Positions 28,201-28,943 of a stretch of DNA of 64,000 nucleotides are shown one piece after another (position 1 is the stretch's first letter; each line of letters starts with the position of its first letter). A program made the translations under genes and the position numbers. Source of the stretch: Saccostrea cucullata (Eukaryota); assembly GCF_032062105.1 (NCBI RefSeq), contig NW_026928590.1, positions 124,001-188,000 on the forward strand. The letters run 5' to 3'. The notes under the pieces were generated by a model. It worked only from the letters and a program-made list of their open reading frames with translations. It had not been told where the DNA came from and searched no databases.

Positions 28201-28943
28201 TATGTCAATTAATCAAACAAGATTTCTAGTAATATAACCCTTATGATATAAAGAAAAAGACTATTTATTTAATTGTTATTAGCCTTTTGAAATAATTTAA
28301 ATACCTGAGTTTGTTTTCAATTGTTGTAAAATGACTAAATAAGATAAAATGAGTCTATGTAGGAAGCTTTATATTTCTTGCATTGTTTAAACAGTGATTC
28401 TGATGGTGGGAATCGGAGTGGTGGAAGTGACGATAATTATTGTGGGAATTCTAGCAGTCAAGCGATTTAGACAGAATAAGTAAGAAACACAATAAAATCA
28501 ATCATATTTCCTTCGCATTGTAGCAACTGTTCTTGTCAATGTAAGATAGAAAGAAAAATAAAGGATTCAACAATAAAATACTTGAGATTTCGTCCATTTC
28601 TACAAGAGATTCTCTTTTGTTCTACAGAAGCAACACGATAAGACGCAGTAAAGAAAATGACGGTCGACCTGTCTCCAGAAAGACAGTCTGTAGTATTGAT
28701 AACGTATATGCCACAATTCCAGAGGAAGAATTCGATGAGAACCCATATAAAGATCTGTCTGAAGGGGTTTATGATACAACCTCAAAACGAAGATCTCATG
28801 TCAATGGTGGCTGGAACGAATATTCCAGAGGAAGTTTTTATACTCGTTTGTTTCGAAGTTCAAAAATAAGCGGAAGCAGGCCAGTAGAGGAAACACACCC
28901 AATGTTTTCAACATTCAGAGGTTCGAAAAAGGAAACAAAGTAA
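22293..28943 (+). CDS. Cassette C: complete type I membrane protein, signal peptide - CUB - mucin-like stalk - 2 spacer exons - TM - tyrosine-motif tail (~479 aa); join(22293..22344,22659..22876,23507..23657,24855..25262,26910..27014,28001..28105,28395..28479,28628..28943)
   Basis: All introns are GT-AG with consistent phases (1,0,1,1,1,1,2); the spliced length is 1440 nt and open to TAA. Leader MYAVNLYFVSVVTAFWF; CUB motifs ITSPGYP..NY....Y.W.V.AP, C.DYL, C, GNKLMIVFHSN, KGFRL; TM VILMVGIGVVEVTIIIVGILAV followed by KRFR. Confidence 0.85.
23703..23949. repeat. ~121-bp direct tandem duplication at the end of a palindrome-bearing repeat (related copy at ~53590-53910)
   Basis: gaatttacataatacatattatccgataat...cgtcacaatgagttacc occurs twice in tandem. 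Confidence 0.8.
24369..24560. mobile_element. Tc1/pogo-type MITE, TA TSD
   Basis: TA|CAGTGGACC ... GGTCCACTG|TA with internal ATCCGGATA repeats. Confidence 0.8.
25500..26040 (+). mobile_element. Penelope-like retroelement fragment (RT relic plus 3' repeat core)
   Basis: NLTFRFMDNVLSINK...YVDTIYPGELDIK resembles Penelope-like RT FRYIDDVLSLNN...IYP.ELEIK. Confidence 0.6.
26522..28130 (+). repeat. Tandem duplication (~570-bp unit) that doubled the spacer exon of C; the second unit has a ~500-bp insertion
   Basis: 26522-26870 aligns with 27095-27442; homology resumes near 27958 into the second spacer exon. Confidence 0.8.
28395..28479 (+). CDS. Transmembrane exon of cassette C (VILMVGIGVVEVTIIIVGILAV-KRFRQN)
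   Basis: acag acceptor and gtaaga donor; 22-aa hydrophobic run followed by a basic stop-transfer; paralog at 37245-37329. Confidence 0.85.
28628..28943 (+). CDS. Cytoplasmic terminal exon of cassette C with ITAM-like and ITIM-like tyrosine motifs
   Basis: The phase-2 acceptor tctacag joins the TM exon in the frame of ORF 28617..28943; it encodes DNVYATIPEEEFDENPYKDL, VYDTT and SFYTRL; paralog at 37531. Confidence 0.8.

Follow-up and report, generated by a model that had tools for sequence, protein, structure and literature searches.

An exon of the oyster Saccostrea cucullata encodes a protein tail in which an earlier note recognized two kinds of tyrosine-based signalling motif, an ITAM-like pair and an ITIM-like sequence. 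The question raised by this locus is whether these motifs are what they resemble and, if not, which part of the tail is conserved. The locus was analysed within a 64,000-nucleotide stretch of contig NW_026928590.1 (the window), and positions are counted from its first nucleotide.

The gene around the tail exon

The last coding exon, 28628-28943, belongs to a type I membrane protein (Table 1). RNA-type runs yield contigs in which the stalk, transmembrane (TM) and tail exons are joined in frame: stalk joints occur in contigs of X1, X2 and X3, the GT..AG joint 27013>28000 (cut +1) itself in X1 and X2, and the GT..AG joint 28479>28628 in a single contig of X1 (RNA on record) and another of X2. Contigs aligned at 90% or more may derive from paralogues, and all three X1 contigs differ at position 28842. 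Searches for the 5′ exon that would hold this copy's start codon and signal peptide were negative; upstream of 22657 the sequence is indel-rich among the four cassettes and ends at a TTTTAG acceptor-like site. The exons of this gene were searched one by one against Pfam, and the five separate pieces gave no match at threshold, including no CUB domain in exons a or b. Because of this result the CUB label of the gene rests on its relatives: exon pieces a and b align by tblastn with the CUB region of P0002, a protein in which Pfam identifies a CUB domain at residues 37-141 (E 1.3e-9).

Table 1. Features of the receptor gene and its neighbouring paralogue (positions within the window)
Feature	Position	Strand	Basis
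CUB-like exon a, limits approximate	22688..22882	+	tblastn of Ostrea edulis P0002 residues 30-95
CUB-like exon b, limits approximate	23507..23656	+	tblastn of P0002 residues 94-144 and P0003 residues 33-81
Ser/Thr-rich mucin-like exon, limits approximate	24857..25297	+	open frame
Stalk exon 1	26909..27014	+	paralogous to stalk exon 2; spliced contigs
Stalk exon 2	28001..28105	+	joints 27013>28000 and 28104>28394 (GT..AG, cut +1), contigs of X1, X2, X3
TM exon, Glu within hydrophobic stretch	28395..28479	+	translation; joints 28104>28394 and 28479>28628
Last coding exon, 104-aa cytoplasmic tail and stop	28628..28943	+	AG acceptor; stop 28941-43; in frame after TM exon
Conserved tail core, residues 13-59, three invariant tyrosines	28665..28805	+	dN/dS, codon columns
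ITAM-like span D-N-V-Y-A-T-I, acidic x9, Y-K-D-L	28698..28757	+	sequence reading, shuffle test, family conservation
Third invariant Tyr-Asp (Y48, D49)	28770..28775	+	4 residues past second Yxx-hydrophobic motif
ITIM-like S-F-Y-T-R-L, Tyr 28839-41; unconserved	28833..28850	+	shuffles, paralogue comparison, dN/dS
B-type TM exon of second TM+tail module, 80% identical to its TM paralogue 28395-28479	37244..37330 (paralogue match 37241-37330)	+	tblastn
B-type tail paralogue	37535..37803	+	two tblastn pieces in different frames; frame shift between 37699 and 37702

The receptor family is tandemly expanded. The mucin-like exon has four paralogous copies within the window (at 168, 12951, 46199 and 62759), and the tail exon occupies at least 20 places in this genome, with 11 intact copies at 82-100% identity when this one is included. 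Two further candidates, L021 and L022 (E 0.5 and 1.3), gave no tblastn alignment and were not used as tail copies. The B-type tail carries the motifs Y-D-T-I and Y-K-D-F around a nine-residue spacer, and its read-through open frame is identical to the public gene model P0005. Frameshifted family copies are the one at 37535-37803 in the window, L014/L015 and L017/L019.

Motifs, chance and constraint in the tail

Every element listed in the earlier note (DNV-YATI, a nine-residue acidic spacer, YKDL, VYDTT and SFYTRL) was found in a single frame, and the acidic residues that it placed at -3 of both tyrosines are D and E. Within a 108-codon open frame, the D lies at 28698-700 and the first tyrosine at 28707-09 (YATI, with I at 28716-18); the spacer P-E-E-E-F-D-E-N-P then leads to Y-K-D-L (Tyr at 28746-48, Leu at 28755-57), followed by S-E-G-V-Y-D-T-T with the third tyrosine at 28770-72. 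A spacer of nine residues lies outside the canonical ITAM range of 6-8 and inside the extended range of 6-12, a definition used in PMC6994640 and PMC6219719. In 200,000 shuffles of the 104-residue tail, the pattern Yxx[LI]-x6-12-Yxx[LI] occurred 669 times (0.33%), or 99 times (0.05%) when D or E was required at -3, compared with 26,682 occurrences (13.3%) of the ITIM pattern [SIVL]xYxx[LVI]. Given these rates, the ITAM-like pattern exceeds what composition yields and the ITIM-like pattern does not.

The core of the tail (residues 13-59) is under strong purifying selection. Among ten paralogues its dN/dS was 0.045 versus 0.65 for residues 60-104, both based on pairs that are not independent within a small family. 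Codon columns gave a matching partition, with 6 columns variable in amino acid and 21 variable only synonymously in the core, whereas the flanks had 33 and 7 (Fisher p 1e-6). Ten residues were invariant in all 14 aligned genomic copies, two of which are at 48% identity: N25, Y27, I30, P31, E37, Y40, Y48, D49, R55 and H57.

Searching 1.84 billion representatives with a profile returned 23 matches, 22 of them family, and all named members are oysters (Saccostrea, Ostrea, Crassostrea/Magallana). P0022 (813 aa, E 5.9e-5) has none of the motifs and was discarded as spurious, and P0019, a model that crosses a frameshift and misses the second and third tyrosines, was left out of the counts. Seeding protein searches with words of the P0007 and P0002 tails found 10 and 4 proteins, those named being all from oysters, with no genera beyond Crassostrea/Magallana and Ostrea; as far as these searches reach, the family appears to be restricted to oysters. 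Pfam detected a CUB domain in 7 of 11 relatives tested (E about 8e-7 to 4e-16), among them full-length relatives at E 1.3e-9 to 3.7e-16, the other four being truncated models. The family architecture is a single CUB head on a mucin stalk rich in Ser/Thr, followed by a Glu-bearing TM helix and a tail of roughly 100 residues. Comparison of the tail profile with PDB sequences produced six weak matches, dismissed as chance (best E 0.16, FGF9), and a search of the ESM Atlas with the tail gave no usable match; neither search linked the tail to a characterised signalling tail. No literature was found on LOC105325460, nor on this CUB receptor family by title or abstract among the matches listed.

The claim that the tail carries an ITAM was upheld only in part by these alignments. 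The pattern itself is real, with two Yxx[L/I] motifs in the exon spliced onto the TM exon, and the tyrosines are conserved: both were present in 14 of 14 genomic copies, all three in 22 of 22 family sequences, and the residue at +3 of the first was Ile in 21 of 22. The second +3 position gave a mixed picture, and the spacing did not hold. At +3 of the second tyrosine we found V in nine sequences, L in eight, I in two and F, A and Y in one each, so that L or I accounts for only 10 of 22. The spacer between the first two tyrosines, corrected by eye for P0004 and P0006, was 9 residues in five sequences, 13-14 in three (13 twice, 14 once) and 16-24 in fourteen (16, 17 and 24 twice each, 18 five times, 19 three times), the value of 9 being confined to the Saccostrea-type subfamily. 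A strict ITAM at the homologous tyrosines was found in 3 of 22 sequences, all from that subfamily; in the closest subfamily (NPYK[DE]L, including Saccostrea and Ostrea) YxxI and YxxL were both kept in 6 of 8 representatives. In contrast, the spacer between the second and third tyrosines was 4 residues in 22 of 22, with D at +1 of the third in 21 of 22 and T, S, A or M at its +3. Of the residues flanking the first tyrosine, N at -2 and P at +4 were each present in 18 of 21 scored.

The second claim, that SFYTRL is an ITIM recruiting an SHP-type phosphatase as a balance to the first motif, failed. Its pattern occurs at chance level, and the tyrosine is unconserved among paralogues, being replaced by Phe in L004/L005 and in the B-type copies L012, L013, L016 and L017, with a codon that is polymorphic between TAT and TTT and a local dN/dS of about 1.1. 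No aligned tyrosine or counterpart motif was found in the other oyster genera. Lying outside the conserved module, SFYTRL as an ITIM is very improbable on this comparison and we reject it.

Weighing the readings of the tail

Taken together, these data somewhat favour the reading that the noted stretch is the conserved tail core of an oyster-restricted type I receptor, which may serve as a phosphotyrosine docking module. The putative functional unit would be N-[VIL]-Y-x-x-I-P, an acidic linker that varies in length and Y-x-[DE]-[VLI]-x4-Y-D, with its three invariant tyrosines set among acidic residues. The tail is ITAM-shaped only in this one lineage, and the three conserved tyrosines are probably best regarded as candidate phosphorylation-dependent docking sites. 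In such a receptor, ligand-driven clustering would lead a Src-type kinase to phosphorylate the tail tyrosines, and the phosphorylated tyrosines would recruit SH2 proteins. Because the linker is only nine residues in the subfamily of this gene, its first two sites take ITAM form, and the pair Y27 and Y40 could be read jointly by a protein with tandem SH2 domains, whether a kinase of Shark/Syk type or a phosphatase of SHP2 type. An SHP2-type reader would have a precedent by analogy, since CDCP1, a CUB protein of vertebrates, carries the ITAM-like YAVI...YGHL.

Candidate partners exist, since Shark-, Src- and SHP-type loci lie in this genome: a colinear SH2-Ank-Ank-SH2-Tyr kinase on C6143(-), an SH3-SH2-kinase on C13104 and an SH2-SH2-PTP at C13551:225.6-235.6 kb. 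In the scan that located them, 132 of 899 kinase candidates were scored, as were 150 of 862 on the phosphatase side; a Syk proper, with SH2-SH2-kinase but no ankyrin, was not located among those 132. Further tandem-SH2 places were observed on C13359 (two), C17301 and C12954. Other docking classes fitted the tail poorly: an NPxY/PTB reading was rejected on N-P-Y, in which the x is missing, and an ITSM reading on N rather than T at -2. Nck- and Crk-type consensus motifs are pYDxV and pYxxP, and a reading of this type for the third tyrosine is unsupported by its +3 residues.

The strongest form of the ITAM proposal is that doubly phosphorylated Y27 and Y40 bind both SH2 domains of a Syk/Shark-type kinase. 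The gene fits the extended consensus including the acidic -3 residues, the closest subfamily largely keeps both motifs, a Shark-type locus is present, and the TM helix contains a Glu. ITAM adaptor chains characteristically have an acidic residue in the TM segment. Moreover, ITAM-Syk signalling has been reported in oyster (PMC6994640), and the ITAM of Draper, within the x6-12 definition, is reported to bind Shark directly (PMC6219719). Nevertheless, a conserved ITAM is argued against because the spacer is 13-24 elsewhere in the family, the second +3 residue varies (V, A, Y or F in 12 of 22) and a Tyr-Asp at fixed distance is left unexplained; the fixed-distance partner of Y40 is Y48 rather than Y27, and few sequences have the strict pattern. 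We therefore consider a true ITAM fairly unlikely. Alternatively, unphosphorylated YATI and YKDL may act as Yxx-hydrophobic sorting signals for clathrin adaptor complexes, governing how a mucin-like surface protein is endocytosed or sorted. A trafficking role is conceivable because the first two motifs fit that signal (as does Y71 in this tail) and the linker is an acidic cluster. The residue at +3 of the second tyrosine is a bulky hydrophobic in 20 of 22 sequences (V9, L8, I2, F1), a better match to a sorting signal than to an ITAM, and a linker that varies in length yet is always acidic would suit independent signals. However, the most invariant features (N at -2, P at +4, and the third tyrosine with Asp at +1) are unneeded for adaptor binding, and the strict four-residue spacing between the second and third tyrosines is left unexplained; we regard sorting as a quite unlikely account.

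That the pattern arose by chance in a drifting or dead gene copy without function is very unlikely, and for the family such a reading is close to refuted. Frameshifts in several family copies and the missing start exon of this one would fit it, but the low core dN/dS with its 21 synonymous-only columns, the invariance of three tyrosines across at least three oyster genera and the spliced contigs do not. A bolder extension of the docking module starts from an ancestral oyster tail with three tyrosines and a linker of 13-24; shrinkage of the linker to 9 in the Saccostrea-type lineage would have turned it into a working ITAM, on a chain that has its own CUB head for ligand binding and an acidic residue in the TM helix. 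On this reading, an ITAM receptor complete in one chain would have arisen independently, within a variable, tandemly expanded family that signals through a Shark/Syk-type kinase. We hold it to be unlikely; if true, the family would be a candidate immune or self/non-self receptor system of oysters.

Significance and comparison with known systems

Bivalves mount specific, trainable immune responses. To our knowledge they do so without antibodies, and few signalling receptors have been identified in them. The locus adds an uncharacterised, oyster-restricted, tandemly expanded family with a strongly constrained tyrosine module, and it offers concrete residues (Y27, Y40 and Y48 of the tail) and concrete candidate partners in the Shark-, Src- and SHP-type loci. 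The linker range of 9-24 forms a natural series bearing on the phosphotyrosine distance that a tandem-SH2 protein can read. The tail is also a caution about motif spotting, since constraint is seen in only one of the two motifs that had been noted.

Among known systems, the oyster receptor CgIgR is reported to bind CgSyk through the motif YTEL-x8-YEKL (PMC6994640). Like CgIgR and ITAM receptors generally, the present protein has two Yxx[LI] motifs with an upstream acidic residue in the tail of a type I membrane protein. It differs from ITAM receptors in its spacer of 9, which is 13-24 in relatives, in a second motif that often ends in Val and in the fixed third Tyr-Asp, and from CgIgR in an ectodomain of CUB and mucin rather than Ig. 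No sequence similarity to a known ITAM chain was detected when the tail was compared with PDB sequences and the ESM Atlas.

In CDCP1 the YAVI/YGHL pair is reported to be phosphorylated by Src-family kinases and to bind the SH2 domains of SHP2, and the residue numbers given there put its spacer at 5 (PMC4395315). CDCP1 resembles the oyster protein as a CUB-bearing type I glycoprotein with an ITAM-like pair in its tail, and YATI nearly equals YAVI. CDCP1 is not known to carry a Glu in its TM segment. It is also without a mucin stalk, unlike the oyster family, and the PDB matches of the family CUB domain were cubilin, neuropilins, MASPs and PCPE, with CDCP1 absent among the 28 matches listed.

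The ITAM of Draper is reported to be phosphorylated by Src42A and bound by Shark, a kinase of SH2-ankyrin-SH2 organization (PMC6219719). As in Draper/CED-1-type receptors, an invertebrate receptor here carries its own ITAM-like pair plus further tyrosines, which are functional in Draper. The oyster family, in contrast, is without an EGF/EMI ectodomain, has N-P-Y, one residue short of NPxY, and is oyster-restricted within the reach of the searches. Finally, Y-x-x-I and Y-x-[DE]-[VLI] around an acidic run recall Yxx-hydrophobic sorting signals, whereas the invariant flanking residues and the third tyrosine of the oyster tail fall outside that signal.

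The tail exon and its tyrosine motifs

The earlier note described an ITAM-like tyrosine pair together with an ITIM-like motif in one receptor tail, and translation of the tail frame returned every motif residue at exactly the position reported. All motifs lie within one 108-codon open frame that forms the final coding exon of a spliced gene, and the TM exon joins the tail exon in frame via a split codon. An acidic spacer of 9 residues separates Y-A-T-I from Y-K-D-L. When the 104-residue tail was shuffled 200,000 times, the extended ITAM pattern Yxx[LI]-x6-12-Yxx[LI] was matched in 669 shuffles (0.33%), and in 99 (0.05%) with D/E at -3. 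The ITIM pattern [SIVL]xYxx[LVI] was matched in 26,682 (13.3%), indicating that the ITIM-like match is unremarkable by itself.

Contigs from three public sequencing runs, each covering small parts of the region (X1, RNA on record; X2 and X3, RNA by guess only), were aligned to 23200-29150 at a likeness of at least 90%. GT..AG joints connected stalk exon 1 to stalk exon 2 (27013>28000; X1 and X2), stalk exon 2 to the TM exon (28104>28394; X2 and X3), and the TM exon to the tail exon (28479>28628; one X1 contig, whose shorter arm is 57 letters, and one X2 contig). An X3 contig of 376 letters also spans the TM-tail joint; it differs from the window at 28 of 286 letters and thus derives from a paralogue. 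At position 28842 all three X1 contigs carry T instead of A, the Thr-to-Ser state of paralogues, and contig differences in the tail core fall nearly all at third codon positions (hand count from coordinates). At this likeness, the spliced contigs show use of the exon structure by the family as a whole, rather than expression, or a level of expression, of this particular copy. At three stretches all three runs had very high contig depth, numerous loose ends and odd joints; the stretches resemble interspersed repeat copies lying within introns.

Features of the window gene, its surroundings and candidate partner loci (window coordinates unless a contig is named)
Feature	Location	Remarks
TM exon	28395-28479	hydrophobic helix with internal Glu, then basic residues
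Tail exon	28628-28943	start set by AG acceptor; stop 28941-43
D-N-V-Y-A-T-I	28698-28718	translation of tail frame
Y-K-D-L	28746-28757	translation of tail frame
V-Y-D-T-T	Tyr at 28770-72	translation of tail frame
S-F-Y-T-R-L	28833-28850	translation of tail frame
TM+tail modules	28395-28943, 37244-37803	only two in window
B-type tail copy	37535-37803	frame shift between 37699 and 37702
Further CUB + mucin cassettes	11741-13289, 44235-46564, 55849-63100	
Stretches directly upstream of CUB-like exons	22570-22700, 11680-11800, 44180-44310, 55770-55900	indel-rich across four cassettes; end in acceptor-like TTTTAG
Tandem repeat	30154-30579	166 bp unit, 2.6 copies
Tandem repeat	23703-23949	121 bp unit, 2.0 copies
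High contig depth	24394-24592, 25787-25985, 27379-27975	
Shark-type kinase locus	C6143 ~88000-98750 (-)	L029 + L030
Src-type locus	C13104	SH3 (E 1.1e-18), SH2 (E 4.8e-14), kinase exons
SHP-type locus	C13551	SH2 starts 225.6 and 231.2 kb, tyrosine-phosphatase piece 235.5 kb, one strand
Convergent loci	C13359:5121-8385 (+), 16114-19396 (-)	two SH2 starts each

Conservation across an oyster receptor family

A profile of 14 tails was searched against 1.84 billion representative proteins (E<=0.001), giving 23 matches, 22 in the family; the protein P0022 (813 residues) was rejected as unrelated and without the motifs. Name look-up of ten matches returned four Saccostrea cucullata, one S. echinata and two Ostrea edulis proteins, all annotated as 'uncharacterized' or given mucin-like names. 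In a second search the tail of P0007 was identical to that of the Crassostrea gigas protein LOC105325460, and closely related proteins occurred in C. angulata and Magallana gigas. No non-oyster organism occurred among the named matches of the tail searches, and no publication on this family was found in the literature searched, among the matches listed.

Full-length relatives have a signal peptide and a single Pfam CUB domain, along with a long stretch rich in Ser/Thr, a TM helix usually containing Glu, and the conserved tail. Pfam recognised the CUB in 7 of 11 family proteins run (E 8e-7 to 4e-16), and it is similar to the CUBs of cubilin, neuropilins and MASPs. The TM Glu stands in G-I-G-V-V-E-V-T in the window gene and recurs at 37244-37330 and in P0002, P0007, P0011, P0017, P0021 and P0031; most members inspected keep it, and P0016 is an exception. 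Being charged and within the TM helix, it suggests that the receptor pairs with a second membrane chain. It is also reminiscent of the acidic TM residue of DAP12, FcR gamma, the CD3 chains and other ITAM adaptor chains. Of the four cassettes, only the one at 55829 has an in-frame ATG in the stretch directly upstream of its CUB-like exon. The next tail (locus L007) lies just past the window end.

The tail of the window gene was compared with 21 representatives; P0019, a frameshifted model, and P0022 were excluded, and the rows for P0006 (an additional internal Tyr) and P0004 (first motif ending in Ser) were set by eye. All three tyrosines are present in 22/22 sequences. The first is followed by Ile at +3 (21/22) and Pro at +4 (18 of 21 scored) and preceded by Asn at -2 (18 of 21 scored). 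The second has D/E at +2 (20/22) and, at +3, V in 9, L in 8, I in 2 and F, A and Y in one each, while the third has Asp at +1 (21/22) and T (15), S (3), A (3) or M (1) at +3. Four residues separate the second motif from the third tyrosine in every sequence. The spacer between the first and second motifs is 9 (five sequences, all Saccostrea A- or B-type, the two paralogue classes), 13 (two), 14, 16 (two), 17 (two), 18 (five), 19 (three) or 24 (two) residues. In the alignment of homologous tails proposed in the earlier note, both ITAM-like tyrosines are thus kept, as is nearly always the first +3 residue, and the second +3 is V about as often as L.

The strict pattern Yxx[LI]-x6-12-Yxx[LI] occurs at the homologous tyrosines in 3 of the 22 sequences (window gene, P0001 and P0003). 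The closest subfamily, marked by N-P-Y-K-[DE]-L and V-Y-D-T-T-x-K-R-R, is more ITAM-like than the family at large: YxxI and YxxL are both kept in 6 of its 8 representatives, and the eight spacers are 9, 9, 9, 9, 9, 13, 13 and 14.

Paralogues and selection

A six-frame search of the species' own assembly found 23 tail matches at 20 distinct places. Eleven are intact A-type exons, the class of the window gene, including the window copy (82-100% identity by tblastn and alignment); two of them, L004 and L005, share 98.9% DNA identity and may be two haplotypes. One A-type copy is frameshifted (L014/L015). B-type frames are open in L012 and L013 and frameshifted in two copies (L017/L019 and the one at 37535-37803 in the window, which reads Y-K-D-F where the window gene has Y-K-D-L), and two distant copies have 48% identity (L018, L023). 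The 125-residue public model P0005 is, letter for letter, a read-through translation of the window's frameshifted B-type copy. In the 14 places aligned (L005, three frameshifted places and L021/L022, without tblastn alignment, excluded), N25, Y27, I30, P31, E37, Y40, Y48, D49, R55 and H57 are invariant. Y71 of the ITIM-like motif is Phe in L004/L005 and all B-type copies.

Substitution rates were estimated from 10 intact A-type exons (45 non-independent pairs). In the core (residues 13-59) dN was 0.016 and dS 0.35 (dN/dS 0.045), against 0.109 and 0.167 (0.65) in the C-terminal part (60-104); the ITIM span (69-74), with few sites, gave 0.063 and 0.057 (1.1). Core codon columns were amino-acid-variable in 6 cases and synonymous-only in 21, compared with 33 and 7 in the flanks (Fisher p 1e-6). 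All three tyrosines therefore lie inside the block under constraint, which ends before the ITIM-like motif. In the juxtamembrane residues 1-12 (28629-28664), amino-acid change exceeds silent change (dN 0.162, dS 0.060, dN/dS 2.7; 10 of 12 codon columns amino-acid-variable), which, given the few sites, may be noise.

Reading of the tail, candidate partners and known systems

The tail is acidic and looks disordered; its three tyrosines are invariant, their neighbours are constrained, and the second and third keep a set spacing. Together these features point to phosphotyrosine docking rather than structure or mere sorting. The conserved unit is broader than an ITAM and distinct from one: N-[VIL]-Y-x-x-I-P and Y-x-[DE]-hydrophobic-x4-Y-D, joined by an acidic linker whose length is free. 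In the window-gene lineage, where the linker is short, the first two sites take on an ITAM shape, and a tandem-SH2 protein could read them jointly. The ITAM half of the earlier note's proposal is partly supported, the tyrosines being conserved and the ITAM form lineage-specific; a working Syk/Shark ITAM is the less likely reading. Tyrosine motifs serving as sorting signals only are unlikelier still, and chance as the source of the pattern is very improbable. On balance we favour a candidate module for phosphotyrosine docking, with sites that do not make up a dedicated Syk/Shark ITAM.

Judged apart from these readings, ITIM function of S-F-Y-T-R-L is hardly credible; the shuffles, the Phe in place of Y71 in paralogues and the dN/dS of its span give the proposal no support. 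As far as sequence can tell, this is a tyrosine-based signalling tail, neither a plain ITAM nor an ITAM-plus-ITIM pair, and a candidate, testable signalling module within an uncharacterised, expanded oyster receptor family, not surprising in kind.

Colinear exon matches, as distinct from proven transcripts, show the presence, and only the presence, of the proposed partner machinery in the genome. The Shark-type locus reads, on the minus strand, SH2 (Pfam E 4.7e-9), two ankyrin matches (1.4e-10, 7.8e-9), a second SH2 (7.7e-7) and tyrosine-kinase exons (2.8e-18, 2.7e-15); 2 of the 10 pieces submitted in its analysis had no Pfam match. The convergent loci on C13359, which may be duplicates or haplotype copies, score nearly equal to the SHP-type locus.

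The tail profile gave no usable match in PDB sequences or the ESM Atlas. Three receptors were compared as parallels, homology being shown for none. Oyster CgIgR carries five Ig domains, its tail ITAM has a spacer of 8 residues, and it reportedly binds CgSyk and activates ERK (PMC6994640). The ITAM of Drosophila Draper (given as x6-12) is phosphorylated by Src42A and bound directly by Shark, and additional non-ITAM tyrosines matter too (PMC6219719). The closest functional parallel found is human CDCP1, a CUB-bearing membrane glycoprotein in which Y734 (YAVI) and Y743 (YGHL) make an 'ITAM-like structure' (PMC4395315).
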